DNA of 64,000 nt, taken from IMG/VR virus record IMGVR_UViG_3300014720_000001, positions 140,622 to 204,621 of that record; one strand, given 5' to 3'. Shown one piece after another: positions 2,994-38,987 of this stretch (the stretch's first letter is position 1; the number at the start of each line of letters is the position of its first letter). The notes under the pieces were generated by a model. The model was given only the letters and a program-made list of their open reading frames with translations. It searched no databases and was not told the origin of the DNA. The position numbers were made by a program, and so were the translations under genes.

Positions 2994-3010
2994 TGCATCT
3001 CCATGTGCCC

Positions 3011-10703: not shown

Positions 10704-10716
10704 GCAGCGCTCCTAA

Positions 10717-11391
10717 CTATTTCGGACCGGGGTAGTCAGTTTGCTTACCACACCAAGCAACTAAACGCCGCCACAACGACGGCTTAGTTTGTTTCGCCGC
10801 GGCGATGAGGGCGGCGGCTTCGCTGAGTTTTGCGTGAACGTCCTGTAACTCCTTATACACCACGTTGAGCCGAGTCTGCAATACGTCGTTTTGCATTTTC
10901 AAATGCTCGGCCATGAAGTTGGCGTTGTAAGTCGGCGTACCATTGCGCGCGGCAAACTCAACAACTGTAGCGGCAAAGCGAGCCATACCGCCGGCAGCAG
11001 GCGACTCTTCACCGATTACAGATACCTCGCGCACACCCTTGAACCACGCAGCGCAGAACACTTCGCCGATCGCTGCAAACAACGCAAGCCGAACAGGATA
11101 TCTAAAAGAAAAAAAGTCGCGACGGTTTAGCGCCTGCTCAAACGTTCGCACCGGATCTGCGCCGTTCACGAAGTCGCGCTGCGCTGCAGCCAACGCTTCC
11201 GCGATTTTGACGATCTCGTCCTGCGAAATGTTGTGCTCTTCGTACCATTTCGCGGCGTCGTCTGTGCGGGCTGCCGGGTCAAGGTTTTCAATCGCACGCA
11301 CCATCAGTGTTGGCGTGACATAGGCGTAATCCCGCTCGGGGTTGTACAGCGGGCCGCTATCGCCCTTTTGTCGATAACCAATGCTGCTCAT
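10717..11391 (-). CDS. hypothetical protein
   Basis: 224 aa, coiled-coil C-terminus. Confidence 0.75.
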   Translation of the reverse strand: MSSIGYRQKGDSGPLYNPERDYAYVTPTLMVRAIENLDPAARTDDAAKWYEEHNISQDEIVKIAEALAAAQRDFVNGADPVRTFEQALNRRDFFSFRYPVRLALFAAIGEVFCAAWFKGVREVSVIGEESPAAGGMARFAATVVEFAARNGTPTYNANFMAEHLKMQNDVLQTRLNVVYKELQDVHAKLSEAAALIAAAKQTKPSLWRRLVAWCGKQTDYPGPK

Positions 11392-11403
11392 AAACGTCCT
11401 TTC

Positions 11404-17923: not shown

Positions 17924-18275
17924 CGTCTTCCTCGTCGTACTTGTCGGCGTTGTGCTGCTCGTCGTACTCGTCGACGGCTTCCATGAATTCATCAAACGTC
18001 AAATCTGGAGCGTTTTGACACTCCAAAAACTGATAGATGAATTTACTTTCGCCGGTCTCTTTGTCGACGCGTTCCATCAACCGGTAGTGCATCATGTCGC
18101 CGGTTTCGTGGTTGTACCCGCTGATAATCGTGTCAGCTTCGGGCAGCGGGACCGGCAACTTTGAACCGTCTACAGGGCCGCCAAAACATTCGGCGAGCGG
18201 GAACAAGCCTTTTTGCATGCCCATAAATTCATGTTCGATAACCCCGTCGTCTTCGTCTTCTTCTGCCTCGTCCAT
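17907..18275 (-). CDS. acidic hypothetical protein
   Basis: GGPVDG motif, D/E-rich termini. Confidence 0.7.
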   Translation of the reverse strand: MDEAEEDEDDGVIEHEFMGMQKGLFPLAECFGGPVDGSKLPVPLPEADTIISGYNHETGDMMHYRLMERVDKETGESKFIYQFLECQNAPDLTFDEFMEAVDEYDEQHNADKYDEEDDDSES

Positions 18276-19645
18276 TAGTCCACCTGTCCAAGAGGATCGA
18301 AATCCGCTCCAACAACTTCGCCAACTGTGCTAGACGCAGCCATTAGCTCGGGTACGTCGGTCATCTGGTTTTTCTTCAACTCTTCCATCACCTGCTCGCG
18401 GTACTTGCGCGCCGGATCGCAGACGGTGTAGTCGTTAACACCGAGTAAGCCGTGCAGCATGCCGAGGACCTTTGGGTTGTCTTCGAGCATGATGGACGCC
18501 TCGACTTCCGACACGGCTTCCTGCTTGGAAATACCGAGCGCCTTGGAGAAGACGAGCGGTGTTTCGGCGTTCTTGGTGCCGTGCTTGTACTCCAGATCGC
18601 AGACCTGCTTGAGCAAGCCCGGCAGCTTGGGGTCCATGCCCGGAACCGGCTTACCGTCGCCCGCCTGTAGCTCCATAAGGAGCCGGATGGACGCAGTGTG
18701 CCAGTCCCAGAAATGGAACTGCTGGTTCTTGTAGGTCTCGTTGCCGTTCTTATCGACGGCCGGTACGATCTCGTTGTACCAGAGCAGATTAACAACGATC
18801 TTGCGCCCGGGAGCGCCGAGATTGTTCTTAGTCGCTGCTATACGAATCGACGCACCCTCATAACGCGGCGGGATGTTCTTCTGCGACGCCTTCGACATGT
18901 CGAGGATCAACGTCGGATAGTAATCCAGACTGGCGCCGCCGGGAGCGTACTTCTTGGGCGGACCAAATCCCATGGAGTTAATTTCCTCCTTGAGATGGTT
19001 CGTCGCAACAAGCGCAATCGGGTAATGCCGCAGCGTAGGCACCAGCGCCGTCCGCATGAAGTCCGACAGATTGCGGGCGAGATACGGGTGACCGGCCGCG
19101 GCGTGACCCTCGTCGGCTACCTTCTCGACGCGCCTATCAACCTCGACAGCCGAGATAGAGTCGATGCCGATACAGATAGGAATAACCCTGTCCGGGGCGT
19201 TAGCGGCGTCAACTTGCTTGTGAATAGCCTGACAGAATTCCATGTAGTGCTTTTGCCATTCTTCCACGCTCGCTGCCGTCTTGATCCGGGTGCGCGAGAT
19301 GTACTGCTGGTTGTGACTGAACAAGCCCGACATCATCGTCGGCGAGCCCTTGTTTTCCGTGTCGATCATGATGGCGCCGCCGCCATACATGTGAAACCAG
19401 CGCATGATCTCGATGAGCAACGCGGACTTACCGGCGCTGAACTCGCCGCGAAGCTGCGTGAAGCGCGACAGCGGGAAAATGTTAGCCTGCAGCAGATAGC
19501 GGGCTGCAAGCGTGGGAAGCGGCAAGCCGATCAGCGGGTCTTGATCTTCCGCCGTCGCCTTGAGCACTTCCGTGATAACCGGATGCTCGCCGTTGCGGGC
19601 GAACACATCAACTTCGTCGTGATCTTCTTTGCGTTTCCTGCCCAT
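18275..19645 (-). CDS. recA: RecA/UvsX-like recombinase
   Basis: Walker A GEFSAGKS, IDTE, IGIDSI, ATNHLKE, APGGASLDYY, KNNLGAP. Confidence 0.9.
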   Translation of the reverse strand: MGRKRKEDHDEVDVFARNGEHPVITEVLKATAEDQDPLIGLPLPTLAARYLLQANIFPLSRFTQLRGEFSAGKSALLIEIMRWFHMYGGGAIMIDTENKGSPTMMSGLFSHNQQYISRTRIKTAASVEEWQKHYMEFCQAIHKQVDAANAPDRVIPICIGIDSISAVEVDRRVEKVADEGHAAAGHPYLARNLSDFMRTALVPTLRHYPIALVATNHLKEEINSMGFGPPKKYAPGGASLDYYPTLILDMSKASQKNIPPRYEGASIRIAATKNNLGAPGRKIVVNLLWYNEIVPAVDKNGNETYKNQQFHFWDWHTASIRLLMELQAGDGKPVPGMDPKLPGLLKQVCDLEYKHGTKNAETPLVFSKALGISKQEAVSEVEASIMLEDNPKVLGMLHGLLGVNDYTVCDPARKYREQVMEELKKNQMTDVPELMAASSTVGEVVGADFDPLGQVD

Positions 19646-19670
19646 AAATTCCCTTCTGATATGAAAGCCC

Positions 19671-19717
19671 CAGCTCCGGCGCACACGCACCCAGAGAACA
19701 ACGTGGCGCCGGAGCTG
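19671..19717 (-). other. intergenic 12-bp stem hairpin (processing or termination signal)
   Basis: CAGCTCCGGCGC / GCGCCGGAGCTG inverted repeat. Confidence 0.5.
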
Positions 19718-21108: not shown

Positions 21109-21160
21109 ACAAACCTTTCTATGTAATTGAGGGCCCTATTGCCCTTTGTGGATGTCTGCA

Positions 21161-21188
21161 ACTATAGCAGACAAAACCAGTCTGTCTA
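21161..21188 (-). promoter_or_regulatory. sigma70-like promoter upstream of the SSB gene
   Basis: TAGACA-16 nt-TATAGT with extended -10 TG. Confidence 0.4.
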
Positions 21189-24100
21189 GCCCTTCTCATC
21201 GCAAAACCAATCGATCCCCAAACCCCTAGATTTCGCGGGTTTTAGGTTCTCTCCCCAGTGGAAAAACACGTCGCGACTCATGCCGAAATGGTATGGCCCG
21301 GCGTTCTCAATCTTGGTGCCGTCCAACCTATGCGGCCAGAACGGTACCCCAGTTACCATGCACTCTGGAATAACTTCTTTGTAAACGCGCTCGGCGTGCT
21401 CTAGCGGCACAATTAACACAATCGCGTCATGGATCTGCAGCGCGATTTTGTAATCAATATCCGAGTGCTCTTCGCGATACTTGTAGAAGTTGTAAAGCGC
21501 AATCGACACGGCGTCAGCTACTCCGCCTTGAATTGGGAAGTTCTGCGCCTGTCGCTCCTGCTCGCCACGTACAGCGCGGTCCTTGGTGGGCATGAACCGG
21601 CGGAAGCGGCCGTACGGACCAACTAACCAGCCCGGGTCTTGAGACCGCATACGGCACTCTGCCAGAAATGACTTCGTGCCGGGATAAGACTGAAAGTAGG
21701 CGTCAATCATCGCTTGGCACTGATCGGCCGTGACGTCGTGACCTTCCTCTTTGCACTGGCGCGCAAGAGCTTCTGAGCCGCGGCCGTACGGAATGCCGAA
21801 GTTCACGTTTTTGGCTGCAACCCGAAGACCCTTTACACCAGCGTCGGCCATACCCTGTTTTGTGGGCGTGACGCCGCTGAGCCGGAAGGTCTTAACCGCC
21901 TGCTGACTGTGGATGTCGTAGTGATCCGGGTGATCCTCTGGCAGAAGATTACGCCGGACGTGCTCGATCATATTTTTATCTTGGCTCAACCACGCGAGGA
22001 CCGCCAGTTCCGCACCAGTGAGGTCGGTTTCGATACCAACGCAGCCCTTGGGTACACGAAGGATCGAGCGCACGGGATGCTGGTATCGGTCCTTTCCGAG
22101 AATGCGCTTGTAGTCGTCTTCTCGGCGGGAACTGAGGTTCTGCAAAGGAGGTCGGCTGCTGCTGGCTCGGCCTGTTTCCTTCGTCTGAAACATGTGAGTA
22201 CGGACCTTACCGTCGGTGTGGACACAGCCGACAAGACCTTTCTCATACGTGTAATTACCGTTCTCATCGAGTTCGTATTCTCCGTCGTCTGTTTCAGAAG
22301 GTTTACGCAACACGGACTGCAGCACCTGACTGATAAATTTGTAGTCACGGATTTTCGCTGCGGTCGAGTTAATGTGGCCAAGGATGCCCAGACTTTCTTT
22401 GTCCGTGCTGGGTGTCACGGTGTCAGCGTTCAGCCCGCGGTACGTCAACTCGTTCCACAGCACGGGGCGCTTGCCGGTTGTTTTAACCGGCCGCAGATCA
22501 AGCGTCTGCGCCGCCTCTGGGATCGTCGGCGAGTTTGTATACCGGTCAGCGAAATCCCGGCCAAACAGCGCAATGGCGAGCTGCGGCTGCGACTTGGGAT
22601 TAAACTCTGGCCACTGCAGTTCTTCGCGAATCTCGGCCAGTAGTTGCTCCTGCGTGTTCATAAACAGCGTGGTCAACTCGTCCGCGCGATTGCGGTCGAT
22701 TTCAAGGCCAGTCATTTCCATCTCTAGAAACGCCAGCGACGCGTTATGGGCGGTCCAGTACGGCAGCCAGCAGTCGTGGCCTGTGCCGGACCGCGCGATA
22801 ATTCCGTCTTTGCCGTTGGTGCCGTAAAAACGCATCATGATGCGGCGCGTAACGTCGACGTCATACGAGGCGTACGGATGGAGCACGTGCGCCGGACACT
22901 CGCCGTACCCGCCGACTTCACTGGCTTTCAATTTGTTATCAGTACGATACTTTTTCTTCCAGTGGTCGAGCGGTTCCCAATAGGTCGGCGCCGCCGTAAA
23001 CCGCATAGAGCATTCGTCGAGCCCGTAGCGCGCGCACTCGTTCACGGCGTGATACATCAGGCTCGTGTCCCAGCCGCCGTGCGTGCGGTCGTCCGGGTCT
23101 TCGGCGGGCGCATACTCCGGCCGAACGTCCACACCGAAATCAACGAGCCACGGCAAGTCAGCGCGGAAGAAGTGCCCGCCAACGCGGACATGACGATCAG
23201 GCGTGCTTTTCAGCAGACGAATCATTTGCTGGCGAGCCGCGTTCAGATTTGGCTGGAACGCTTCCGCGCCGCCTTGGTGCCGCAGAACTATTGTTCGGGC
23301 CCACTTGTCTTTATTTGATATCTGAACCGTCCGCAGATACGCGCCGTCTTCCGTCGGATAGTCGCCGTGCCACTCACAATCGATGGCGATGATATTGGCG
23401 TTCGGGTCCGGGTCGGCGAGCATGGCGTCCACGACTTCCGCTAGCGCCTCTTCGGTATAGATATCAGCGTGGTCAACCGCTTCTTCGTCCAGCAGTTCGT
23501 CGTGAATAAGCGCTTTGAACCGCCGGATCTGCCCGACAAAATCTTCTGTTGCTTCAGGCTTGCGCACGACAAATGCCGGGTGCATCACCGACATGGCTTT
23601 CATAGTGCGAGTGTTGCCGTCCGCGTCGGGCGCTGAGATATCTAAAATCCGCCCGGCTAATCCCGTCACCGCGGCGTTGGTACGCATCACCGCTTTTATG
23701 GCCTCGTTGCCGAGACACAAAATAAACTCGGGCTGGACGATGCGGATTTCCTGCTCCAGCAAAATCGCGCAGTTCTTGATCCACGCGGCCGGTACAGCCG
23801 TGATTTCAAACGGCGCGGCAAACTTACACGCAAACGTGACGTACCAGCTTTCGTACATCTCGGGCGGAATACCGCACTCTTCGAAGATCTCGGCCAGCGC
23901 GGTCATGGCTGGACCGGCCGTGGCGTTCAAGCTTTCCATCTCGTAGTAGCCGGGCAGTTTGCCGACGACCATCACCCGCGCTTTGTGCCACGGGCCGTAT
24001 GTCTCGACGGCGGCTGATTTTTTGCCCCAGATATGGCCGGGCAAAAACGAAACCGGAATCAGCTCTTTTGACGACTTGTGCGAGATTGGCAGGTGAAAGT

Positions 24101-24353
24101 CCGGCCGGTAAAGCGCATTGCGATACAAGTTCGTCAAGTGCGTCCCAACCGGCACGCTCTTCTTTTTCTTCGCGCTCGCTTCATCAATTTCATCGCCCAG
24201 CACCACTGCGTGCGCAATGAAGTCTGGGCCGGCTGGCGGCATACCCGGATCCGTAAGCGGAATGAACGGGTATGCCGCAGCCGTAAAGTCTTCTGTATTC
24301 GGATCGTACAGCGTCTGCGTCAGACGGTGCGTAAGCGAAATACCCTGTGCCAT
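21186..24353 (-). CDS. polA: family A DNA polymerase with N-terminal UDG-like domain and 3'-5' exonuclease (SPO1-like architecture)
   Basis: UDG-like VMVVGKLPG...EIRIVQPEFILCLG...HPA; exo DCE, YASYD; pol motifs DLTGAEL, RVAAKNVNFGIPYG, NFPIQG, QIHD. Confidence 0.95.
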   Translation of the reverse strand: MAQGISLTHRLTQTLYDPNTEDFTAAAYPFIPLTDPGMPPAGPDFIAHAVVLGDEIDEASAKKKKSVPVGTHLTNLYRNALYRPDFHLPISHKSSKELIPVSFLPGHIWGKKSAAVETYGPWHKARVMVVGKLPGYYEMESLNATAGPAMTALAEIFEECGIPPEMYESWYVTFACKFAAPFEITAVPAAWIKNCAILLEQEIRIVQPEFILCLGNEAIKAVMRTNAAVTGLAGRILDISAPDADGNTRTMKAMSVMHPAFVVRKPEATEDFVGQIRRFKALIHDELLDEEAVDHADIYTEEALAEVVDAMLADPDPNANIIAIDCEWHGDYPTEDGAYLRTVQISNKDKWARTIVLRHQGGAEAFQPNLNAARQQMIRLLKSTPDRHVRVGGHFFRADLPWLVDFGVDVRPEYAPAEDPDDRTHGGWDTSLMYHAVNECARYGLDECSMRFTAAPTYWEPLDHWKKKYRTDNKLKASEVGGYGECPAHVLHPYASYDVDVTRRIMMRFYGTNGKDGIIARSGTGHDCWLPYWTAHNASLAFLEMEMTGLEIDRNRADELTTLFMNTQEQLLAEIREELQWPEFNPKSQPQLAIALFGRDFADRYTNSPTIPEAAQTLDLRPVKTTGKRPVLWNELTYRGLNADTVTPSTDKESLGILGHINSTAAKIRDYKFISQVLQSVLRKPSETDDGEYELDENGNYTYEKGLVGCVHTDGKVRTHMFQTKETGRASSSRPPLQNLSSRREDDYKRILGKDRYQHPVRSILRVPKGCVGIETDLTGAELAVLAWLSQDKNMIEHVRRNLLPEDHPDHYDIHSQQAVKTFRLSGVTPTKQGMADAGVKGLRVAAKNVNFGIPYGRGSEALARQCKEEGHDVTADQCQAMIDAYFQSYPGTKSFLAECRMRSQDPGWLVGPYGRFRRFMPTKDRAVRGEQERQAQNFPIQGGVADAVSIALYNFYKYREEHSDIDYKIALQIHDAIVLIVPLEHAERVYKEVIPECMVTGVPFWPHRLDGTKIENAGPYHFGMSRDVFFHWGENLKPAKSRGLGIDWFCDEKG

Positions 24354-24359
24354 AACGCC

Positions 24360-25427
24360 TCACAACAAAAACGAAAGATCTGCCGAAACATCCACAGCAT
24401 CTGCGGACGCCGACAACATTTCAAATAACTCAGACCGGGAGTAGTCAGCTGGATCACGATCATCGGGCAAGATGACCGGCACAACATTAACGTTCCGCTG
24501 GCAAAGAGCCGACACGACCTGCTCTAGCTCTGTCTGCGCGTCGTGGTCGAGCACAACGAACACAGGCTTATTTGCCCATGTCGTTGCGATCGTGTTGCAC
24601 TGCCACGCTGACAACGTCTTACCAAAAATGCAGACGCCGGCAACCCCTAGCCGCCAAACGCTCGGCACGCCCTCGACCACGACGGCAACCGGCTGCGTAG
24701 CCGCGTTGTCGTAGTTGTAAAGAACCTGACTTTTGCGCATGCCGTTGTAGTACTTGACGGTCATCTTGCTGTTGCCAACAACGCGACCCTGCCAGCCGAC
24801 CAACTGCCCGTGAAAATGAACCGGAATGTAAATACGGCCGTGCATAATCCGATGCTTGTCCAGCCGCGGATTTACGCACACGCCGATTTGAAACATTTCG
24901 GCTAGCTCGGCGGGGTCAAAACCGCGGCCGGTCAAATAATCAATCGCCGGGTGGTACGCAGGCAACGTAGCAAGCGGAAGTATCTCTCCCGGCGGTTCAA
25001 TCGTCTCGTGCGCCGTGTCGAGCGGCACGGAGCGAATTGGTGTCCGCAGCATGAGTCGCCGGCCGGCGCCGAAAACCATGTCTTCAAACTGCTCAAGCCG
25101 GCCGGGCTTATCGAGACAGTTTTCGTTGTAGCACACCACCAGATGCGTGTTTGCCCGACGACCGTTGCGAATGTCTGCTCCGTACCGGTGATTTACCCAC
25201 AGACGACTTCGCTGGTCGCGACAAAACGGACAACACACGCAGTAATACTCACCCCAGTTTCCGCGATACGTAACCTTACCGCGGCGGAGTGGATCATCAA
25301 ATTGTTCGACCTGCGCGGGCACACCTTCGTTTGCGATAGTTACCTCGCCGAACTTGTGCGCGAGCAGACCGTACAGTACGGGATTCAGGGGATTTGAACT
25401 TGGCGTCTTTGAAACCGCCATTTTCAT
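24360..25427 (-). CDS. DNA primase (Zn finger + TOPRIM)
   Basis: CPFC...CYNENC; RIYIPV, GWQGR, KY, VVEG, LDHD, DPAD. Confidence 0.9.
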   Translation of the reverse strand: MKMAVSKTPSSNPLNPVLYGLLAHKFGEVTIANEGVPAQVEQFDDPLRRGKVTYRGNWGEYYCVCCPFCRDQRSRLWVNHRYGADIRNGRRANTHLVVCYNENCLDKPGRLEQFEDMVFGAGRRLMLRTPIRSVPLDTAHETIEPPGEILPLATLPAYHPAIDYLTGRGFDPAELAEMFQIGVCVNPRLDKHRIMHGRIYIPVHFHGQLVGWQGRVVGNSKMTVKYYNGMRKSQVLYNYDNAATQPVAVVVEGVPSVWRLGVAGVCIFGKTLSAWQCNTIATTWANKPVFVVLDHDAQTELEQVVSALCQRNVNVVPVILPDDRDPADYSRSELFEMLSASADAVDVSADLSFLL

Positions 25428-25438
25428 ACTGACTCCTC

Positions 25439-27115
25439 TCACGACATCATGTCTTCAGCAAATGTGTCTACCGGAATAATACGCCGAACAGCCGAACGCG
25501 GACGGGTGAGTGCCGCCGCTTCTTCTGGACTAACCGGCGCGATGTCGCCGCGCTGAATGATGCGCTTGGCGGCTTCAGACGCGGTGTACTCGTCGTTTAC
25601 AAGACGAATCTCGGCAACTTTGTCATCAATCTTGATCAAACCTTTGAGGTTATCTGCCCGAAGGTAACGCAACTTCGACCAGTAGATCGTCGAAACATGG
25701 CACGCCTCATCGCGCGCATTTACGCAAAGGCACGCGTGCAGATTCTCCGCGAACGACTTTGAACCGGACGCGTCAGCATGCGAAACGTACCGATACGGGG
25801 GGATGTTTTTAACTTCACCCTGCGCGAGCTGATGCGCCAGCATAATTACAGCGCCCGACGGCACCGCAATCCTCGCCCGTAACTGGTCAACTGCGTTTTT
25901 GATTGGCCGCGCCATCGACTCTGAATACTTCGTCTTGACGTTGGCGTTCATTTCACGCTCAACCATGACGCCGCAATAGTCGATGGCCACAAACCCAATT
26001 TCCATTCCACGCTCGCGGGCCAGTTGCTCCAGCGCCACGACAATCTCCGCCACGCCGCCAGCGCCGCGATTACCGGTCTTCTCGTTCTGCGAAAAGTCCA
26101 GATACATAAAGTTATGATTAAACCACGAAATAGCGGCGACCCAACGCTCGCGTTCACCGAACATGACTTCGCCGTTTCGATTGACCGGCAACTCGCGATC
26201 GTAGTCTTTAAGGTTGTCAGCGGTCGACAGCTCATTCCAAAAGTCACGCCCGACGGCAAACAACGAACGATCAATTTGCGCAGCAGCAGACCAGAACGTC
26301 GGATTCATCTTTTCGGCCGGATCTTCGTAGCCGATAAATACCGACAGTTTATTGGGCGAGTTTGCGGCATACTGCTGTGCCATACGGACAGCCGTAACGG
26401 CCAGAAGTGTCGTCTTACCGCCGCCATAGGGCCCTAAGACGCCAATAATGTCACCTGCCCGAAAACCTTGCAGGTACTCGTCAATAAACGGCAGCGTCGT
26501 TGGGACCGCGACCGGCGGGAGCGCAATGGGCGATCCGGGCTCAGGCATCATGGCCGCGTTCTCAAACCGCTTGCCCAGTGCCTCGACCGATTGTGCTTTT
26601 CTCGTCCACTGCGCTAACTGCGACTCTAGGTTCTCCGGCGCGCCGCCCAAAGTATTCAGTACGGCCTGCGCCTCGCCTTTGACCATGCGCTCGCGAATAA
26701 ACCGGCGAGTGATGTCCTCGATGTAGGACTTCTCGGCGCGAGCTTCGGTTTCGGCCAGCGGAGTAACGCTAAAAGACGCGTCGACAAAACGGACCAACTC
26801 CTCGACCGCGTCGTTACTTAACGGAAGGGCAGAGGTACCGGCGACGGCGCTGTCACGCCACGCCAGTAATCGCGTGTTGATCATTTCGGCCGTGAGCGCG
26901 CCGAACTGTTCGTACAGTTCTTTCATCGCCGCAAACAGATAGTAAAACGGCAACTCGTCCAGCGTCTGACCGAAATGGCCGTGTGTAAGCCCAACGCGCA
27001 ACGAATCACGCAGCAGGGAGGAGTGCTGTAGAAACCCCGAGATCATCGTGCCAATCTCGGACGTTGTCACCGCGTCGACTGTCTTTAATTTTTCGTCTAT
27101 GAACTCACTAGGCAT
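25439..27115 (-). CDS. DnaB-like replicative helicase
   Basis: GPYGGGKTT, FIGYE, VAIDY, LAHQL; adjacent to primase. Confidence 0.85.
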   Translation of the reverse strand: MPSEFIDEKLKTVDAVTTSEIGTMISGFLQHSSLLRDSLRVGLTHGHFGQTLDELPFYYLFAAMKELYEQFGALTAEMINTRLLAWRDSAVAGTSALPLSNDAVEELVRFVDASFSVTPLAETEARAEKSYIEDITRRFIRERMVKGEAQAVLNTLGGAPENLESQLAQWTRKAQSVEALGKRFENAAMMPEPGSPIALPPVAVPTTLPFIDEYLQGFRAGDIIGVLGPYGGGKTTLLAVTAVRMAQQYAANSPNKLSVFIGYEDPAEKMNPTFWSAAAQIDRSLFAVGRDFWNELSTADNLKDYDRELPVNRNGEVMFGERERWVAAISWFNHNFMYLDFSQNEKTGNRGAGGVAEIVVALEQLARERGMEIGFVAIDYCGVMVEREMNANVKTKYSESMARPIKNAVDQLRARIAVPSGAVIMLAHQLAQGEVKNIPPYRYVSHADASGSKSFAENLHACLCVNARDEACHVSTIYWSKLRYLRADNLKGLIKIDDKVAEIRLVNDEYTASEAAKRIIQRGDIAPVSPEEAAALTRPRSAVRRIIPVDTFAEDMMS

Positions 27116-27875
27116 CGTAATTTCTCCAATACTGCCTTATCTCGACAACGCCGAGTTTAATTTCGTTTTCTATCCACCATGCGTATTCTGGATGCGTCGC
27201 GATTACGGCGTCATATGACCGCTGCTGCGCTTCGTAATCCAGCGCGGCTTTCCATAAATAACGCTCGACGGCTTTTTCGCAGTTACGGCGAGAGGCAAAC
27301 GCGTTTCGAAAAAACGGAGTCGCTGTGACGTAACTTTCGTCGCAGAGTACGTATAGTTCCTGCGTGGCCTCCGGCATTTTGTATATCGCGGTTGTTGACA
27401 TTCGTAACTTCAACGTCTCTGCCGCCACGTGAAAACGATCTTTAAGTATCCGCGGCATATGAGTCATGTAGTCGCGGTAAATCTCGGCTGACTTGGCGCT
27501 GTACAAAATCGCTGGGCGCATTTCCGTCAAACGCTGATTGCCGGTCGCAATGCGTTCGGTCGCAATGGCCGAAAAATGCGCGTATACCCAGCCGCCAAGA
27601 TCCGCGTCGACACGTTCTGCGGCGCGAAGAATTTTGCCCCAGACAGGCGTGTGTTTTACGCCGTAGGAGTCTTTACCGCCGTCCCATGACGGCCTACGCC
27701 GAGTATGCGTATTTGCGTCCCAGTCGTGGACGCGTTCATTTAGATATATGTACTGGTACCGGATGTAAGCAAGTTTTTGCTCCGGCGTCAGAAACCTGTA
27801 CCAGTCAGCTGATAATAGATCTACATCATTCCCCGCTATCTGCTCCGCGGGTTCGCCAAGAGCGCTGCGCGTCAT
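27108..27875 (-). CDS. hypothetical protein in the replication operon
   Basis: Start MTRSAL with GGAG; lies between the SF2 and DnaB helicases. Confidence 0.75.
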   Translation of the reverse strand: MTRSALGEPAEQIAGNDVDLLSADWYRFLTPEQKLAYIRYQYIYLNERVHDWDANTHTRRRPSWDGGKDSYGVKHTPVWGKILRAAERVDADLGGWVYAHFSAIATERIATGNQRLTEMRPAILYSAKSAEIYRDYMTHMPRILKDRFHVAAETLKLRMSTTAIYKMPEATQELYVLCDESYVTATPFFRNAFASRRNCEKAVERYLWKAALDYEAQQRSYDAVIATHPEYAWWIENEIKLGVVEIRQYWRNYDA

Positions 27876-29364
27876 GCCAATTCTGCTCCCATCCGAGGAG
27901 TTTATAGCTGTTTCGTCGCCCCAGACTCTTCCGATAGAAGGTCGGGTCGAACGTGTCCATGCAATCCAATACTTCGCCAAACTCTTTTCGCGTGCCGTCT
28001 GGAGCTGTGTAAATTCGACTTACACGCCCCGGACCCTGCACGTCCACAATATCGCTATCGCGGTCATCGGCGCGGACAAGAACATTTAGTTGTTCAAAGT
28101 CGACACCGGTGGCCCATACGTCCGTGGCGATTACGCGCTTGAGTTGTCCAGCCTCGAACTGAGAACGCATGTCGTACTTTTGAATGTCTGTGAGCGGCTT
28201 GTAGTCGGCGGGCAAAAGGCCCTTTTTCCGATAGCCGGCACAGTCATAAGGCGACATGTTTCCATATACGAGACTGAAATCAGGCAATTGCGCGCCGAGA
28301 TGAACAGCGTGTTCAATCGTCTCTACGAGGATCAGAATTTGGTGAGATTCTGGATATCCCCGCACGGCTTCGGCGATGATACGGTTCCGCTCATGGTTTG
28401 TCCAGATGCCGTATCGCTTTCGCGCCACACGGTTGTTGTAGCGCTCGGCAGGGTTCGCACGCAGCCGCATGGGAAGCCAATTGACTCGCACCGGCACAAC
28501 CAGCCCAAGCTCGACAGCGTTCTGGTAGGTCAACTCGAATACCATCGGGCCGAACATGGGCTCAAGCACCGCATGAGCGTTGTCCATTCGGGCGTATGGC
28601 GTCGCGCTCAAACCAAAGTTGCGGCTTGTGCGATAGCGGGCGGCTAGCGCCGTAGAGAAATTGATCGTAGCGAGCTGGTGAACCTCGTCGGCAAACAGGA
28701 AGTCTGCATCGCCATCCGAGTGCGCCAAGCTGCCAGCCGTGATCACCGTGACGCGCTCCCACTGTTTCCAGCCGTCGCCTACGCGGCCCACTTTCGGCAA
28801 AAGCCGTTTCAGGCTGCGCACGATACGGTCGGCTACGTCCACGGACTTTGTAACGACGTGGATCTTGGCGGTAGGAAACAACAGTGCGGCAGCGCCGATC
28901 AGGGTCGTTTTGCCGAACCCGGTGACCGCCTTGATAATTCCGCACGGCACACGAGAGATCGTGCGTAAACATTCTTCCTGTCGGGCGCGAAACGTAATCC
29001 GACCGTCCAGATTCTCCCACTGCGGCGTAAAGCAGTCTGGCCGCTTTCGCTGGCCGGACCGATCTACAAGCAACGTGGGACAACCAAGCTTTTTCAGGCG
29101 GTTGACCATGCGCGCCAGATATCCGCTCAGCACAACAACATGGCCGTGCTCGACGCGGTATAGCTTGTATTCTTTTGTCTGAAAGAACATGCGCTGTCCA
29201 GTAATCGGATCCCGGCGCGCTTGTCCGTGAACCTGCTCGACGTGAGAGTATCGCAGGTCGTGTGTGAGCCGCTTGATCAGCTCTTCGTTTAATGGCGCAT
29301 TGTCTGCGCCGGTCAGCGTTAAAACGTTGCCAACGCGTGTAATTGTTACCGGTTGTGCAAGCAT
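27826..29364 (-). CDS. superfamily 2 helicase (UvsW/XPB-like)
   Basis: R..Q, TGFGKT, DEVH, GLSATP, ATDVWATGVD, QGPGRVSR. Confidence 0.92.
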   Translation of the reverse strand: MLAQPVTITRVGNVLTLTGADNAPLNEELIKRLTHDLRYSHVEQVHGQARRDPITGQRMFFQTKEYKLYRVEHGHVVVLSGYLARMVNRLKKLGCPTLLVDRSGQRKRPDCFTPQWENLDGRITFRARQEECLRTISRVPCGIIKAVTGFGKTTLIGAAALLFPTAKIHVVTKSVDVADRIVRSLKRLLPKVGRVGDGWKQWERVTVITAGSLAHSDGDADFLFADEVHQLATINFSTALAARYRTSRNFGLSATPYARMDNAHAVLEPMFGPMVFELTYQNAVELGLVVPVRVNWLPMRLRANPAERYNNRVARKRYGIWTNHERNRIIAEAVRGYPESHQILILVETIEHAVHLGAQLPDFSLVYGNMSPYDCAGYRKKGLLPADYKPLTDIQKYDMRSQFEAGQLKRVIATDVWATGVDFEQLNVLVRADDRDSDIVDVQGPGRVSRIYTAPDGTRKEFGEVLDCMDTFDPTFYRKSLGRRNSYKLLGWEQNWHDAQRSWRTRGADSGE

Positions 29365-29365
29365 G

Positions 29366-29863
29366 CTATCCGTCGCTTCCCGGCCCTGAGACGGGTTCGA
29401 CGGAAAGGACTTCAAATGTCCCATATTTTTCCTGTGCGTTGTTGAACGGGGAAAACCCCCGATACTTCCCGACCAAGGTGAGTAAATGCACAAAGTCTCC
29501 CAGTGAAATCTCCTCCGGAAGCACCGCCGACAATATCACAATGTCGCCGGGGCGAAAAGCCTCGTGCAGCGCGTAGTGGCTGCGCATCTGATTATCGGCC
29601 TGTTGCGTCAAAATCGTGCGGCGCCAGTCGTTTCTGGGCTCGCCCATGACGATTGGGCACCAATCAATTTTTTTGACGTCGCTGTGGTGCCGGTTGGCGA
29701 TCTTGGCCGCATACCGCATACACGACAGCCACGCCGACGGCAGAAACATGACACGCTGGCTGGGGTCACGGTCGAAGCAGAAAATAATCTGTCCGTGCCG
29801 CCGCTTTTTGGCGGCTCCGAGGCACACGCGGTTGAACCGGATTTTGATAGTTATTTCCTGCAT
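29366..29863 (-). CDS. stand-alone RAMP (Cas7/Csm3-like) protein
   Basis: ITIKIRF...CLG; FDRD...RVMFLPSAW.S.MR.AA; HEAFRPG; LL..VGKYRGFSPF...YGTFEV (degenerate G-rich loop before the last strand). Confidence 0.6.
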   Translation of the reverse strand: MQEITIKIRFNRVCLGAAKKRRHGQIIFCFDRDPSQRVMFLPSAWLSCMRYAAKIANRHHSDVKKIDWCPIVMGEPRNDWRRTILTQQADNQMRSHYALHEAFRPGDIVILSAVLPEEISLGDFVHLLTLVGKYRGFSPFNNAQEKYGTFEVLSVEPVSGPGSDG

Positions 29864-29864: not shown

Positions 29865-30800
29865 TTATTTCTTGCTCATATGCTCCGCGTACGCCGCCCG
29901 TTCTGCCGGTGTCTTGAAAAACAAGTTTGGCGCGAACAGCCCGTCTTTTGTGCCGCGTCGATTTTCAATCCCGTCTAGCCAGTTGTAACGCAGATAGCGC
30001 ACAAACGCCTGCGACGCTCGAAGATCGCCCTTCGGGCCGCCCTTGGCCGCTTTGTAAATGCGATACAAAAAGTTAGCGGGATCTTGTAAATCAATTGCGT
30101 CTGGTTCCACGGTCTTCCACGTCCGCAAAACATTTGCGCAACGCAGCTCGCGGCCTTTGTGCAGCAAGCGCTTCGGCGTTGACACGCTTGTTTGTACCTG
30201 CGGAGTCAGACCCAGAAACAGCTCCAGCTTAGCCGCACGATCCGGTGACTTACGGTCCACGTACCAGCGCGGATCTACAATCGTGGCCAGCAGCTGCGCG
30301 GCCACTTCCGCGTCCAACGTCGGAATAAACGTCAGCGCTTTATGTGCCGGGTGCATCCGAAAGTACGCCTGCGCCGCGTCGTCAAACACAAAGTTTGTCC
30401 GCTGCATGCGCCCGAGAATCGCGTACGTCGGGTAATCGTGGACCGAAAGCGCATGCCAGCCGCCCGCAGCCGGCGCTACGTCGACACTGCGCATGCGACG
30501 CAAAACAATCTGCGGGTCGTCAATATCTTCGGCAGTGTGCAAGACGTTCGGTCCGGCGATCTCAACGCGGTTAATCTCGTTTTTATGGCGGCGTAAATAC
30601 AGCGCCGAAATTAACTCGGCGTTTTGCGGCAGCCCAAGTACGCGCACCTGTACGCCAATGCCGTTTAGCACGGGAGACAGCAGAAACGAATCCAGCAGCT
30701 GCTCGGAGTTGGTTGCCGGGCCGATTCCGGTTGAAAACCAAACCCGACCATCCGTATGCGTGTGCAGTTTAATTACTGTTTCATCAGTTACGCTGTACAT
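29865..30800 (-). CDS. IS110/Nop (Tas-like) domain protein with degenerate RuvC-like N-terminus
   Basis: HPAHKALTFIPTLDAEVAAQLLATIVDPRWY...KLELFLGLTP resembles Transposase_20 L.TIPGIG...AA.LLAEIGD..RF...L..Y.GL.P. Confidence 0.65.
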   Translation of the reverse strand: MYSVTDETVIKLHTHTDGRVWFSTGIGPATNSEQLLDSFLLSPVLNGIGVQVRVLGLPQNAELISALYLRRHKNEINRVEIAGPNVLHTAEDIDDPQIVLRRMRSVDVAPAAGGWHALSVHDYPTYAILGRMQRTNFVFDDAAQAYFRMHPAHKALTFIPTLDAEVAAQLLATIVDPRWYVDRKSPDRAAKLELFLGLTPQVQTSVSTPKRLLHKGRELRCANVLRTWKTVEPDAIDLQDPANFLYRIYKAAKGGPKGDLRASQAFVRYLRYNWLDGIENRRGTKDGLFAPNLFFKTPAERAAYAEHMSKK

Positions 30801-32937
30801 GCCGCAGCTCCGGAGCTTCGAGTTCAATAGCCGATTCAAACAAGTGAGACAGATTAACCGCGTGGGTTACCAGTAAGCACTGCAACCCCTTGGCCGTTGA
30901 CAGCTCGCGCAGCTTTTCTAGCACCGGGGCCAGCGCTTGAATACGCGGCTGATCCAGTGACGCAGTCGGCTCGTCCAGCGCAAGCAAGCCGATTTCTTCG
31001 GCAAACATCGCGTTGACGGCGACGCGAAACGCAAGTGCCAAGACCGTTTTCTGCCCGACAGATAGTCGTTGAGCGACTTGTCGTCGTCCGTCAAAGAACT
31101 CGGCGATAAATGTTGGTGTTCCATCCGTGGCCACCTTGATAACAAAGTTTACACGAAACACCTGCAGCAACTCATTAATCGCCGCTTCAAGCCGCTGCAG
31201 GTTACGCTGTGCTACGAGCCGCGGCGCATTCTTCAAAGCCTCTCGCGCTGTTTCTGCCAGTCCAGACCAGCGCCGCAGCTTACCAGCCCGAACTTCCTGC
31301 GCTCGCACTTCTGCGCACTGCTCGTCAAACCGCTTCTTCTCGAACAGGATTTGCGCGCGCTGATCCGCCAGCCCCGTGCGCGTTTTCAGCTGCTCCTGTA
31401 ACTGCTGCAACTGCGTCTGCGCCAGATGCGCGTCAGCATGTGTGACAGATATCTCAGCCAACTCTTCTTCGAGCTGCTTCTTGCGGGCCTTGAGCGCTTC
31501 GATTGCGCCATTGACCTGCGCCCGTTCTTCCCGAGCTTTCTGAGCCAGCGGTTCAATCTCTTTCTTGACGCGCTGAAACTCTTCGTAATCCACGACCGCC
31601 TGCTGCAGCTCATCCTCGCTCGATTCTGGCGGCTTTACAGCGAGTAAGTCTTTTTCAGCTGCGTCAAGCTGCTGTTCTTTCGCTTCGCGCGCTTTCTGTC
31701 GCTTTTCCCAATCCTGCCACACGGCCTCTTTGAGTGTCTGACGACTGGCAGCGTTTTTCCACTCCACTAGGTCTTCTTCCATTTTCACAAGGTCAAGCTT
31801 GTACTGCTCAACCTGCGCCGCCAACTGCGACGACGGTGTGTGGCATGTGGGGCATTCGGCGCAACCGTCAGCCGAAAACATATCAATAAATCGTTTGGCG
31901 TCTTTGATACGCTGCTCACGCGAGTGCTGATCGCGGCGCATTTCTTCAGCAGTCGGCAAACCCGGCTTTTCAGGCTGCTGATCTTTCTCGCATTCGGCGG
32001 CTAGTTGCGCGCGCGTGGCCTGAAAGTTTTCCTTGGCTTTCGCGACGCTCTTGTAGCTCGCCCAATGCCCGAGCGCGACCCGGGCGGCGGCGTGCGCTGA
32101 TTCCTGCCCGTCAGCCGCCTGCGTCAACGCCAGCAGGTCTGCGTCGTACTGCGCAGAGGAGTTTACAAGCGCTTCCAGTGCTTGCTGTTGCTGCTCAAGT
32201 TGCTTTTCCAGCTTGGACAGCTCCGCCGCGCCACGCTCTCTGGCGTCCCACTGCTGAATTGTCGTCTGGTCGGCCCGCATGAGCGCCAGAATGTTATCTG
32301 GGTTCGGCAGTTGCGCGATCTGCTCCGCCAGCGCCTGCGCCCGCTTTGCCGCATCATTTGCCTGCGCCTCCAGCTCGTCAGCGGTATGCACGATCTCTGG
32401 AATGCTCAGCTTAGATAGCGACTTGCCAATTACGTCTTGGCACTTGTCAGCCCGCGACGTGTTAAACAGCCGCTGAAAAAACTTATCAGTGTCAGTTTGG
32501 TTGTCGTCAATGAACGAAAAGATCTCAGTCTGCGAGACAATGATAAACCGACTGATAAACTTGGCGTCGACACCCAACAGCTTCTCGATGCCGGCGGTTA
32601 CGCTCTTGTCGCCGCGGCCTATTTCTTTGCCATCCACGAGTAGGGTGGACTGCTCTTTCTCCGGCAGTAGGTGCCGTGTCACAACAGCGATATGCCCGTT
32701 ATGTTCGAACTCTAGCGTGGCGTACGCAGGTTCACCTTCGCGAGCATATTGCGAAATGTTGTCGGACTTTACGCCAAAATTTGGATTCTCGCCGGTGAGC
32801 AGCCATCGAATCGCGCCAAACAAGCTGCTCTTGCCAGAACCGTTTTCGCCGAGAATCGCGACTAACCCGCGGGTAAACTCACACACTCGATAGCGGTGGT
32901 GTACCCAATTCTTCACTTCCAGTCGCAAGAGCTGCAT
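30784..32937 (-). CDS. sbcC: Rad50/SbcC-like ATPase
   Basis: GENGSGKSS, coiled coil with CPTC hook, LSVGQK signature, LALDEPT, VTH. Confidence 0.93.
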   Translation of the reverse strand: MQLLRLEVKNWVHHRYRVCEFTRGLVAILGENGSGKSSLFGAIRWLLTGENPNFGVKSDNISQYAREGEPAYATLEFEHNGHIAVVTRHLLPEKEQSTLLVDGKEIGRGDKSVTAGIEKLLGVDAKFISRFIIVSQTEIFSFIDDNQTDTDKFFQRLFNTSRADKCQDVIGKSLSKLSIPEIVHTADELEAQANDAAKRAQALAEQIAQLPNPDNILALMRADQTTIQQWDARERGAAELSKLEKQLEQQQQALEALVNSSAQYDADLLALTQAADGQESAHAAARVALGHWASYKSVAKAKENFQATRAQLAAECEKDQQPEKPGLPTAEEMRRDQHSREQRIKDAKRFIDMFSADGCAECPTCHTPSSQLAAQVEQYKLDLVKMEEDLVEWKNAASRQTLKEAVWQDWEKRQKAREAKEQQLDAAEKDLLAVKPPESSEDELQQAVVDYEEFQRVKKEIEPLAQKAREERAQVNGAIEALKARKKQLEEELAEISVTHADAHLAQTQLQQLQEQLKTRTGLADQRAQILFEKKRFDEQCAEVRAQEVRAGKLRRWSGLAETAREALKNAPRLVAQRNLQRLEAAINELLQVFRVNFVIKVATDGTPTFIAEFFDGRRQVAQRLSVGQKTVLALAFRVAVNAMFAEEIGLLALDEPTASLDQPRIQALAPVLEKLRELSTAKGLQCLLVTHAVNLSHLFESAIELEAPELRHVQRN

Positions 32938-34060
32938 CGTTAGGTTCTCCCGTCATGTATTTTGAAAACTGTACATCAAGCTCTTTGGTTGCATCTTCGG
33001 CCGCCAACAGTGACGCCGCTAGTTTGTAAGCATCTGTGCCGTCGCCGAGCAGGTCGGCCAGCGCAGACAATAAATCGTTCTTGGCGCCGTCACGTGTACC
33101 AGCGCGCTTGTCGGCGTCGTACTTGTTCGTCAGCGCCTCGCAGAACACGTGCGCCGAATCACCAACTGCCGTGACCAACCGGATATACGCGTCGGGCAAC
33201 CGCTTGTCGAATTTCATGCGCACAATTGGCTTCATGATTTCCAGCGGATGACCAGCCTGCATAGCCTCCGAACGCGCCGCGCTAATATCTCGAACCAGCC
33301 ACTCAGCGCAGAGATTGTCGAGCAATTCTTGATCCTCGACGCGGTAGTCGAGAAACCGGCGGGTCTTCAGCGGCACAGGGCGGAACTCAAAATTGCCCTG
33401 CCCGTCGTCATAGATAACAAAAAAGAACTTTGACGGATCTTCGCCGCAGTCCTGCATGCAAATCGAACCCGGCGACAGCATCTGAATCGGCTGGCCTTGC
33501 GCGTTTGCGGCGGTCACTATCTTGGTCACATGAAAGTCGCCGGCCAGCACGGTCCGGACATGATGCACGTCAAACAGGTCGCACTCGGTGCGGCCTACGT
33601 TGCCCATGAAATCTTTCCAGACCTGATGCACAATCAAGATATCAGTATCTTCCGGCACTTCTTTGAACGCCGTCTGAATCTCGCCGCGCGGTAACCAGTC
33701 AAGGCCGTACACGCGCACACCGTTGATCGTTACGGTTTGCTTATGGATGTGCCGCGACCACTTATGCACGCTCAACCACGGCGCATTGCGGTCGTACTCG
33801 TGATTACCCTGAATGTAGTTCACGTCGAGGTTCGCGGCCTGCATGCGGCTCAGCCCGTTACACAACTGCGCAATCGGTCGAGCTGCGTTGCTTTTCTTCT
33901 CCAGCACGTCGCCGCCCAGAATTAACTGCAAGCCGTGATTGATGCAGTAGTCGATGATCTGATTAAAACTGTAATACGCGTCGCCGTAGATTCCGGGCCG
34001 CGTTGACCATGCACCATCTTCAAGGTGCAGGTCAGCGGTAAACACAAAAAGAGGTCTCAC
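32879..34060 (-). CDS. sbcD: Mre11/SbcD-like nuclease
   Basis: ADLHL, GGDV, GNHE, VHQ, GDFH, SPGS metallophosphoesterase motifs; next to Rad50. Confidence 0.92.
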   Translation of the reverse strand: MRPLFVFTADLHLEDGAWSTRPGIYGDAYYSFNQIIDYCINHGLQLILGGDVLEKKSNAARPIAQLCNGLSRMQAANLDVNYIQGNHEYDRNAPWLSVHKWSRHIHKQTVTINGVRVYGLDWLPRGEIQTAFKEVPEDTDILIVHQVWKDFMGNVGRTECDLFDVHHVRTVLAGDFHVTKIVTAANAQGQPIQMLSPGSICMQDCGEDPSKFFFVIYDDGQGNFEFRPVPLKTRRFLDYRVEDQELLDNLCAEWLVRDISAARSEAMQAGHPLEIMKPIVRMKFDKRLPDAYIRLVTAVGDSAHVFCEALTNKYDADKRAGTRDGAKNDLLSALADLLGDGTDAYKLAASLLAAEDATKELDVQFSKYMTGEPNDAALATGSEELGTPPLSSV

Positions 34061-35001: not shown

Positions 35002-35077
35002 TAGCCGGGGTGAGATTCGAACTCACGGTCCCTAGCTTATGAGGCTAGTGAGGACGACCAGACTCCTCTACCCGGCG
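35002..35077 (-). tRNA. tRNA with CAT anticodon (Met, initiator-like features)
   Basis: Cloverleaf: anticodon arm CTAGC-CTCATAA-GCTAG, T arm GTGAG-TTCGAAT-CTCAC; no encoded CCA. Confidence 0.88.
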
Positions 35078-36143: not shown

Positions 36144-36214
36144 ATGCCCGACTAGGATTCGAACCTAGACAAAAAGAATCAAAATCTCTTGTGCTACCGT
36201 TACACCATCGGGCA
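36144..36214 (-). tRNA. tRNA-Gln (TTG)
   Basis: Acceptor TGCCCGA/TCGGGCA, anticodon loop TTTTGAT, T arm CTAGG-TTCGAAT-CCTAG. Confidence 0.9.
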
Positions 36215-36673: not shown

Positions 36674-37831
36674 TTAATAAATCACGGTCAATGAAACAGC
36701 GCAATCGGTGAGCGGAAACAAGTACACACCGCGCGCAGAAAATTGCCTTGGACGATCCAGCCGCATAACAACGCGGCCAGAATGCAGAAGTGTCGCCACG
36801 ACGTAAGGCCCGGTTGACGAAACCGAGGCGTCGAGCGAGATAACATAATCCGTACCCGGCACAGGGACTTGGATCGCCGCGCCTTGCGGGCCTGTGGCGC
36901 CAGTAATTCCAAGCCTAACCGCTTCTTTGCCGCCGTCAATAACGCGTTCCAACGACGCTACGTCCTCACGCGGTACAAACGCCCAGTGCACCGGCTTTGT
37001 AAATTCGCCAAGGTACCCGGGCCGCTCAATCTGCTTGCGCTGCGCTTCGCTGATGACCGCGGCGATCTCAAGATGCCGCGCAGCAATGTTTACGTAGGCA
37101 AGCAGCGCCGGACAGATAGACGCGTAGTCTTCAGCCGTGTTTGTGCCGGTAACCGACGGCGCTGAACGCGGGTTGACCGGGAAAAACTCGCCGGTCTCAA
37201 GTAGCAGGCAATGCGTGTTGGTGCCGTTGTCGAATGAAATACCGCGGTAAGCCGGGCCAAGTTCGCCGCTGGGAAGCTTATCGCGAAAATTCACAAGACT
37301 GGCCGACAGCGCAGACGCCATCGTGTCTGTGAACTGCGCGGGCGAGAACACACGCGCCAGCATGCGCTCGTTGTAAATCTCAGGCGCAGACGGGTTCACT
37401 GTTAACGGATTTTTTGGGGACTCCGCGACCTCTGCGATCACGGCGTCAAAGATATCTTGGGCAGGAACTTCAGCGCCCGCCAATCCGTTCTCGATCAGGT
37501 CCGAGAACAACACAAGCGCCGCAGTCACAATCGCGGGCGCTGTTTCTTTGGTCGCGCCGTACTGCATCGCGACGTCCAGCCCGCGATTGAGCGACGCGTG
37601 TGTAATCGAAAACGGCACGGCGCCCCAGTTGATGTCGCCAGCTTTCTGTGCCAACGTAGCCAGCGCCTTGATGAACGCCGGATCTTTCTTCGGCGTGCAC
37701 GACTGGCGAAACAGTTCGAGCGTGCAGGCCAGCAGCCGTAGCTGCCCCAGATCGTCCGATGCTCGAAACTTTCCTATGAACTCCCTAAGTAGAACCGACG
37801 GTTTTGGTGATTTGTCCACTGAATACTCCAT
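36674..37831 (-). CDS. hypothetical protein
   Basis: About 385 aa ORF. Confidence 0.75.
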   Translation of the reverse strand: MEYSVDKSPKPSVLLREFIGKFRASDDLGQLRLLACTLELFRQSCTPKKDPAFIKALATLAQKAGDINWGAVPFSITHASLNRGLDVAMQYGATKETAPAIVTAALVLFSDLIENGLAGAEVPAQDIFDAVIAEVAESPKNPLTVNPSAPEIYNERMLARVFSPAQFTDTMASALSASLVNFRDKLPSGELGPAYRGISFDNGTNTHCLLLETGEFFPVNPRSAPSVTGTNTAEDYASICPALLAYVNIAARHLEIAAVISEAQRKQIERPGYLGEFTKPVHWAFVPREDVASLERVIDGGKEAVRLGITGATGPQGAAIQVPVPGTDYVISLDASVSSTGPYVVATLLHSGRVVMRLDRPRQFSARGVYLFPLTDCAVSLTVIY

Positions 37832-38987
37832 CACAAGCGTGTAAAAGTGTCATCACGTTCGATTTAAAAGTGCCAGAAAGATTGTGTGCTGTGCCGCTGT
37901 GGCTATTCACATAAGGGGCAAAGTCAGGTTGAACGTGACGGTCGATAAGAACTGCGTGAAAATCTGCCGCGCGCTCCTTGTCGGACAACGCGCACCGAGC
38001 TTGAATAAACAACTGCAATCCGCGCATAGCGTCGCCTATAAACAACACTACGCCGTTTTGCGTTTGACATATCTGACGCACTTGCTCGGCAAACACCAGC
38101 AAGTCTACGTACGTCGCGGCGCCAAAAGCCGCGCCAATTTCTGCGCCGGGCCCGTCAGGATAAATGTGCCCAGCCATCTCGCCCAGTTCGACATGAATAG
38201 TCGCCGGGACACCCATTGCGTACGCGGACCGCAGCAGGCTGCGCTCTGTCGCGGCGCTAGCTGAATACGCCCACCGACCAGCCGCCTCGCCGTAACCTAG
38301 CCCCTGATTGGCCGCCATACGCGCCACGTAATTCAGGTCGTGCGTGAGTCCCGTTTCGGCCATCCGGATGTCAGCCACGAGGCCGGCGCCTGTAGTCGCG
38401 ACGGCGGTCACGTACTTTTTGCGCAGTAGTTCAACGGCAGCGATGCCAGCGCCGGAGTTAATCGCCGGCGCCGAAATAAATAACAATACCGGCTGGTCAG
38501 CGCCGCGAGCGTTATAGATTGCGCGCGCAACGTCTACGTGCTCGTCGCTAACGGGACAGGGGACCTCAGCGGTTACAGGCGGCATGGCGTCACACGGCGG
38601 AGTCGTGGCCCGAAGGGTGTCGAAAAGCGCAAAGGAACTATTAAGCTGCTTCGGCAGCGCAAGCGCGCTGGGGTCGTCGCCGGCTGTGGCGCGCAGCATA
38701 GCGCCGTTACCCCAAATGAGCCAATTGGCGCTGACGTGTGTGCGGCTGAGCACCTGCGCCAGCAGCGCCGGCGTCACGCGCAGCCGTCCTGCCAGCACCT
38801 GACTCAAGTGCGACGGGTCGAGTGCCAGCGCCCGGGCAAACGCCGGCACATTGTTATCAAAAAGCGTGGCGCAGATGTAATCAAGTCTCTGCAGCCACGG
38901 TTGGTCGCCGTGTTCCAGTTTGCGCTTGTGCTCTTCGAACTTCTTCTGCTGGTGCGGGCTGCGCTGCCCGTTTTTGGGTCTCGGCAT
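37785..38987 (-). CDS. XRE-HTH fused to a deoxyhypusine-synthase-like domain
   Basis: FARALALDPSHLSQVLAG...SANWLIWGNG.M HTH; VTAVATTGAG, GLGYGEAAGR, SLL..AY..GVPATIHV..G, G.ATYVD...F. Confidence 0.6.
   Translation of the reverse strand: MPRPKNGQRSPHQQKKFEEHKRKLEHGDQPWLQRLDYICATLFDNNVPAFARALALDPSHLSQVLAGRLRVTPALLAQVLSRTHVSANWLIWGNGAMLRATAGDDPSALALPKQLNSSFALFDTLRATTPPCDAMPPVTAEVPCPVSDEHVDVARAIYNARGADQPVLLFISAPAINSGAGIAAVELLRKKYVTAVATTGAGLVADIRMAETGLTHDLNYVARMAANQGLGYGEAAGRWAYSASAATERSLLRSAYAMGVPATIHVELGEMAGHIYPDGPGAEIGAAFGAATYVDLLVFAEQVRQICQTQNGVVLFIGDAMRGLQLFIQARCALSDKERAADFHAVLIDRHVQPDFAPYVNSHSGTAHNLSGTFKSNVMTLLHACDGVFSGQITKTVGST

Follow-up and report, generated by a model that had tools for sequence, protein, structure and literature searches.

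The analysed window is a 64,000-nt stretch of DNA, the final 64 kb of the complete 204,621-bp viral record IMGVR_UViG_3300014720_000001 of a freshwater phage. Its minus strand carries a gene for a minimal RAMP protein of 165 amino acids, which is embedded in the replication operon of the phage and is related to Vipr, the RAMP of the VIPR systems. The open reading frame (ORF) contains RFNRVCLG at the end of strand 1 (residues 9-16), FDRD (30-33), FLPSAW..CMRYAA (40-53), EAFRPG (101-106) and GKYRGFSPF...YGTFEV (132-152). The sequence-only reading quoted these motifs for a RAMP/Cas7-like protein; all of them are present, but the terminal loop has 10 residues between G136 and Y147 and not 5, as it had been spaced there.

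Strong purifying selection and many homologues show that the ORF is a real gene, far beyond a chance reading frame. Pairwise ratios of non-synonymous to synonymous substitutions (dN/dS) between the RAMP and its relatives are 0.025-0.09, equally low in the adjacent helicase. Homologues form 228 clusters at 90% identity, mostly from ~200-kb contigs, and the exhaustive profile search gives 180 clusters of the family at 50% identity, all with sizes of 140-260 amino acids. The phage is found repeatedly in lake and freshwater metagenomes of 2020-2025, and RNA runs contain only 4-6% of the words of the RAMP gene. Among 50,697 isolate phages, tblastn gives no match for the RAMP or for the two proteins encoded next to it, a superfamily 2 (SF2) helicase and a TasR-like protein. 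Polymerase relatives in the same isolates are no closer than 21-25% identity, hence the phage has no cultured counterpart.

The record is classed in IMG/VR as having direct terminal repeats, yet no identity is seen between the two ends when 50-2000 bases of each are compared. The 12-nt tandem TCAGTTTGCTGA lies close to both genome ends (G000:C1:97-119 and 204595-204617), which indicates a short or offset terminal repeat.

Fold of the RAMP

The AlphaFold2 model, made from 41 homologs, is confident (pLDDT 82, pTM 0.77). The modelled core is beta-alpha-beta-beta-alpha-beta, of the RNA recognition motif (RRM)/ferredoxin-like type, with a loop ahead of the last strand. The model places a basic beta-hairpin at residues 17-32, helix 1 at 42-56, helix 2 at 121-135 and strand 4 at 150-157, and the G-loop includes G132, G136, S138, P139 and G148. 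A thumb-like hairpin (81-99) carries the conserved W80-R81-R82 and ends in the invariant H100-E101. Across 101 diverse family members G132 is conserved in 98%, G136 and G148 in 100%, and H100 and E101 in 98-99%.

All of the top 50 Foldseek matches in the PDB are RAMP subunits of Cas7 type (Csm3, Cmr4, type VII and type I Cas7, gRAMP), with E from 3e-5 to 8e-4; Cas6 and Cas5d also turn up among the structural matches. For a close relative, the ESM Atlas model reaches a TM score of 0.74 against a PF03787 cluster. The predicted fold matches that of Cas7-type RAMPs. Scans of Pfam, PHROGs, NCBIfam and PADLOC with the RAMP give no match, the PDB sequence search returns chance WD40 matches only, and PF03787 is matched neither by the RAMP at E<=1 nor anywhere in the genome at E<=10. 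The RAMP/Cas7-like assignment made from the letters is thus borne out by structure, through the Cas7-type matches in the PDB and the Vipr matches in AFDB, and finds no counterpart in the PF03787 profile.

Relation to Vipr proteins

VIPR systems consist of a ~20 kDa phage RAMP (Vipr), guide RNAs (vrRNAs) and a vap accessory gene; the guide RNAs have 9-16 YNNGG repeats and are encoded in flanking intergenic DNA (10.64898/2026.04.26.720920). The vrRNA is built of tandem units, YNNGG or another 5-mer with a fixed trinucleotide, followed by a 3' tail, and Vipr polymerises on these pentanucleotide repeats; the resulting RNP filament binds dsDNA by a gapped code. In 2026 Vipr was proposed as the ancestor of all CRISPR RAMPs; it is so far known only as a guide-RNA-dependent weapon between phages. 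The cryo-EM structure of SUSP1 Vipr shows G1 read by H17 and D177, G2 by R138 and W178, and Y3 by R179, with a helical bundle (K33) holding the target at its skipped base; the mutants D177A, R138A and K33A are inactive (10.64898/2026.04.26.720927).

The RAMP family and Vipr are mutually closest by structure. The five AFDB seed proteins of the VIPR discovery take ranks 1, 2, 5, 12 and 14 for the RAMP model among 2.3 million AFDB clusters, and one AFDB Vipr, X1U2U4, has TM scores of 0.60/0.56 to it. The validated locus of Escherichia phage SUSP1 (KT454805.2; Vipr ALH47069.1), which was found through its YNNGG arrays, served as the positive control. The RAMP family profile (101 sequences, 25-48% identity) gives a single match on the SUSP1 genome, and this match lies within the Vipr gene. 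Aligned by hhalign with a 50-member SUSP1-clade Vipr alignment, the family reaches a probability of 94.3% (E 9.5e-8) over 44 columns, which correspond to strand 3, helix 2, the G-loop and strand 4; unrelated profile pairs score 0.1-0.2%. G132, G136 and G148 align with Vipr G170, G174 and G183, and the three glycines are 98-100% conserved in both families. An aromatic residue is kept at the W178 position, and FG.F in strand 4 is common to both. The RAMP belongs to the Vipr branch as a remote homologue, and it is most likely derived from Vipr or of pre-Vipr origin.

The residues that read the guide are different. D177 aligns with P139 of the RAMP (94% Pro), R179 falls opposite a variable site, and nothing corresponds to H17. 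H100 sits by position at the base-contacting R138, in an alignment of low confidence that leaves the R138 equivalent uncertain. The stretch from strand 1 to helix 1 has 25 residues, compared with 48 in SUSP1 Vipr, and is modelled as the short basic hairpin; thus, the helical bundle of Vipr is absent from the RAMP.

Alternatively, the RAMP could be an RNA-cutting or RNA-processing enzyme similar to Cas6, Cas5d or Csm3, in which H100 and E101 form the active site and the substrate is, for example, RNA primers or a phage transcript. Several RAMPs are metal-independent RNases (Cas6, Csm3), and this known activity speaks for such an enzyme together with the near-complete conservation of H100 and E101 and the presence of Cas6 and Cas5d among the structural matches. 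However, the nearest structures are backbone subunits of Cas7 and Vipr type, not Cas6. The place of H100 at R138 suggests binding and not catalysis, within the low confidence of that alignment, and the catalytic Asp of Csm3 type (D33) is not conserved in the wider family. We consider an RNA-cutting or RNA-processing role highly unlikely.

Repeats and VIPR islands

In the complete genome of 204,621 bp, YNNGG runs of at least four units are absent from both strands, with 0.4 expected by chance. Tolerant unit-count scans and composition-blind spectral scans for period 5 likewise give no signal above the Markov background: the maxima are 3.7-3.8 in the genome, 3.3-4.8 in the background and 5.4-7.9 for the arrays of SUSP1 and of the relative L019. 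Non-canonical 5-mer repeats have been reported (10.64898/2026.10.21.760802), and the composition-blind scan covers these as well. The genome contains no CRISPR-like array and no second RAMP (other cas families were not individually searched), and it likewise lacks TIGR arrays and any other short repeats at regular spacing. The sequence-only reading was therefore right, for the window and for the whole genome, that there is no CRISPR locus and that GGY-NN repeats are missing; the repeat-paired RAMPs that it mentioned are those of the VIPR systems (10.64898/2026.04.26.720920). Its interpretation is supported in part, and its RAMP call is right.

Three kinds of sequence were considered as candidate RNAs and rejected. 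A 180/189-nt tandem repeat at G000 20984-21861 lies within an open frame of >630 amino acids, which indicates a repeated protein domain and not an RNA array. Long repeats of period 9, 18 and 27 at G000:C1:17143-19388 and 125699-127208, outside the window, are typical of genes for collagen-like Gly-X-Y protein; as guides they have the wrong period and are coding. Inserts upstream of the RAMP gene in L032, L033 and L035 are also coding.

Canonical VIPR islands do occur in relatives of the phage. L019 (IMGVR_UViG_3300022752_005685) has a replication-operon RAMP that is 82% identical to the one described here and, separately, a complete VIPR island at 2245-3897. Next to a tRNA it has ~500 bp with nine YNNGG runs of 4-6 units, a 120-aa HNH-like ORF and a 234-aa Vipr of the SUSP1 clade (hhalign probability 100% to the Vipr profile, E 4.6e-39). 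The replication module with its SbcD gene follows immediately downstream of the island. In G003, the genome of L017, 8 YNNGG matches fall within ~600 bp (C1:65075-65690), ~50 kb from the RAMP gene. Among ten near-complete relatives a clustered array is present only in G003, and the others have 0-2 isolated matches, as in the reversed-pattern control. This pattern makes canonical VIPR a sporadic accessory island with its own Vipr, and the RAMP a core gene.

The window also has a gene-poor stretch with two tRNA genes upstream of the replication module, which is the kind of place where L019 has its island (Table 1).

Hence, the RAMP gene is not part of a VIPR system, since period-5 repeats and intergenic flanks are missing, the GGY-reading residues are replaced and the helical bundle is absent.

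The replication operon

The module is transcribed in the order 207-aa protein, SbcD, SbcC, 311-aa TasR-like protein, RAMP and SF2 helicase, followed by the ~255-aa protein, DnaB, DnaG primase, the fusion of a uracil-DNA glycosylase (UDG)-like domain with PolA, a 459-aa protein and UvsX. The junctions of the RAMP gene are TAAcATG upstream and TAGcATG downstream, with one base on each side. The description of the RAMP as stand-alone in the sequence-only reading thus fits in that it is the only RAMP and has no array, and fails in that its gene is tightly embedded in an operon.

Table 1. Features of the replication module and of its surroundings (window coordinates)
Feature	Position	Strand	Remark
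UvsX/RecA-like recombinase	18275..19690	-	end of module
Family A DNA polymerase	21186..24353	-	N-terminal UDG-like domain and 3'-5' exonuclease
DnaG-type primase	24360..25442	-	
DnaB-like replicative helicase	25439..27115	-	
Conserved ~255-aa protein	27108..27980	-	between helicase and DnaB
SF2 (ResIII/DEAD-type) DNA helicase	27826..29364	-	likely ATG at 29364
Vipr-like minimal RAMP gene, 165 aa	29366..29863	-	ATG start; stop codon included
TasR/IS110-like protein, 311 aa	29865..30839	-	probable ATG at 30800; stop one base from RAMP start
SbcC/Rad50-like ATPase	30784..32937	-	
SbcD/Mre11-like phosphoesterase	32879..34060	-	
tRNA-Met(CAT)	35002-35077	-	gene-poor stretch
tRNA-Gln(TTG)	36144-36214	-	gene-poor stretch
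400-aa protein	37785-38987	-	weak, sub-threshold match to iHD-CE family (PF24401, E 0.003)

The gene order is identical in relatives with 64-98% identity, in L044 (37%) and in the distant L059 (38%) and L058 (27%). Of 17 loci, 12 have a single base between the RAMP stop and the helicase start, and 3 more have an overlap of the two genes. Adjacency to the TasR-like gene is common, not absolute: the coding inserts lie at L033:8258-9995, L035:8908-10013 and L032:9740-9990, with ORFs of 147-189 aa, 270 aa and ~120 aa, and include a small hydrophobic protein in L032. The RAMP gene is universal in the lineage, fixed in position and among the best-conserved genes of the module. The UDG-like domain of the polymerase (PF03167, E 2e-12) is likewise kept as a fusion in L059.

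In five relatives (L006, L007, L027, L028 and L033) the match to the SF2 helicase starts ~1 kb later, at about 10500-11500, and extends over only ~390 of its 512 residues. These offsets point to an insert of ~1 kb in the 5' part of the gene, such as an intron, an intein or a gene for a homing endonuclease.

The synteny bears on a further proposal of the sequence-only reading, that the RAMP is a Cas7-mimic anti-CRISPR; as such it would poison the host's class 1 effector complexes. A Cas7-like fold in a phage without a CRISPR locus of its own would suit such a protein. Anti-CRISPRs are, however, typically accessory, patchy and fast-evolving, unlike this universal and syntenic RAMP with its dN/dS of 0.025-0.09. 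Its gene belongs to the core, is strongly constrained by purifying selection and keeps a fixed operon position down to 27% identity, and neither PADLOC nor PHROG gives any anti-defence context. The proposal is disfavoured on these grounds, and we give it hardly any credence.

The TasR/IS110-like neighbour

The confident model (pLDDT 89) of the protein encoded upstream of the RAMP has an N-terminal RuvC/RNase-H-like domain and a Nop/Transposase_20-like helical domain. The top Foldseek matches in PDB and AFDB are concordant, with weak E of ~1e-2 and probabilities of 0.7-1.0, and sub-threshold NCBIfam matches and Atlas features agree with them. Beside the RAMP there is thus a relative, likewise without an array, of another RNA-guided family. 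Its strand-1 position corresponding to TasR Asp11 has no acidic residue, which makes its nuclease activity uncertain.

With such neighbours the RAMP could be the effector of a cryptic VIPR-like RNA-guided system, the guide of which is non-periodic or encoded in the host, a satellite or a co-infecting phage. In such a system, accessory enzymes of vap type would be provided by the SF2 helicase and the RuvC-Nop protein. Vipr is indeed the nearest structural family, and both flanking proteins come from DNA-acting families, the upstream one resembling RNA-guided enzymes. In VIPR types III-V the vap genes encode nucleases or helicases (10.64898/2026.04.26.720920), among which the adjacent helicase could formally be counted; orphan vrRNAs on other elements are known and non-canonical 5-mer repeats exist. 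However, the complete genome lacks a period-5 signal of any composition, the RAMP gene lacks intergenic flanks, and the protein has lost both the residues that read GGY and the helical bundle that holds the target. The RAMP is fixed and universal in the replisome operon, whereas true VIPR islands are sporadic and bring their own canonical Vipr; its dN/dS of 0.03-0.09 and invariant synteny are seldom seen in accessory conflict systems. We regard a cryptic guide, the main alternative to the role proposed below, as unlikely.

Proposed role of the RAMP

We suggest, with moderate confidence, that the protein is a RAMP of the Vipr branch whose ligand is single-stranded nucleic acid, bound without any repeat code, and whose partner in replication or recombination is the coupled helicase. 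The conserved surface formed by helix 1, the G-loop and the base of the putative thumb, with H100/E101 and S138/P139, would hold single-stranded RNA or DNA in an extended form. The RAMP would probably do so as a short oligomer. Its gene appears to be translationally coupled to the downstream SF2 helicase and usually also to the upstream TasR-like gene. The RAMP and the adjacent helicase would act on R-loops, D-loops or single-stranded DNA gaps.

Several points weigh against this proposal. We infer nucleic-acid binding, oligomerisation and the replication role, and do not observe them directly, and function is not provable from gene order alone. The sequence-level homology to Vipr is confined to the 44 C-terminal columns, and a Vipr hidden Markov model run on the phage genome does not find the RAMP gene. 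A guide RNA without sequence periodicity is invisible to every scan made. No single-stranded DNA-binding protein (SSB) or gp32 is recognisable in the genome. This absence agrees with a replication role as weak evidence, and it is a weak negative because many genes of the genome are unannotated.

A bolder version, which we consider improbable, is that the array-less Vipr-like RAMP, the TasR/IS110-like protein and the SF2 helicase make up a phage replication/recombination machine that retains the ancestral, pre-guide job of RAMPs. Such a machine might form, stabilise or resolve the R-loops or D-loops at which DNA synthesis starts or restarts. VIPR and later CRISPR effectors would then have been recruited from pre-guide RAMPs.

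The family described here is a large sister family of Vipr, which keeps the RAMP scaffold, lacks guide repeats and forms part of the replisome operon in a widespread clade of uncultured jumbo phages. The VIPR texts searched mention neither a guide-less Vipr homolog nor a RAMP encoded among replisome genes; what they do report is the reverse situation, orphan vrRNAs that have no Vipr. Some members of the family, which includes the MAG protein EBZ69_00175, may have been placed in one of the seven VIPR types of the preprint, perhaps the helicase-associated one. If the role in replication or recombination is true, RAMPs have a function beyond RNA-guided interference, and their pre-guide function becomes testable with one small, well-behaved protein. 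A hidden non-periodic guide would instead amount to RNA-guided recognition of a new kind.

Comparison with known systems

The backbone subunits of the Cas7 family (Csm3, Cmr4, type VII Cas7) share the predicted fold, but the phage has no CRISPR array, second RAMP or PF03787 match. Csm3 is also longer than the phage RAMP, and its catalytic Asp is not conserved across the phage family. TIGR arrays are composed of 36-nt dual-repeat units (PMC12045711). Unlike TIGR-TasR systems and IS110 bridge recombinases, the phage genome has no TIGR array and no bridge-RNA-like repeat next to its TasR-like gene or elsewhere, and the support for this neighbour at the sequence level is sub-threshold.

Last, VIPR is a two-gene accessory island, whereas the RAMP described here sits in a core replication operon. 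What it has in common with Vipr is the type of protein, a phage-encoded single-RRM RAMP of ~20 kDa that has a G-loop and, in the model, a thumb-like hairpin.
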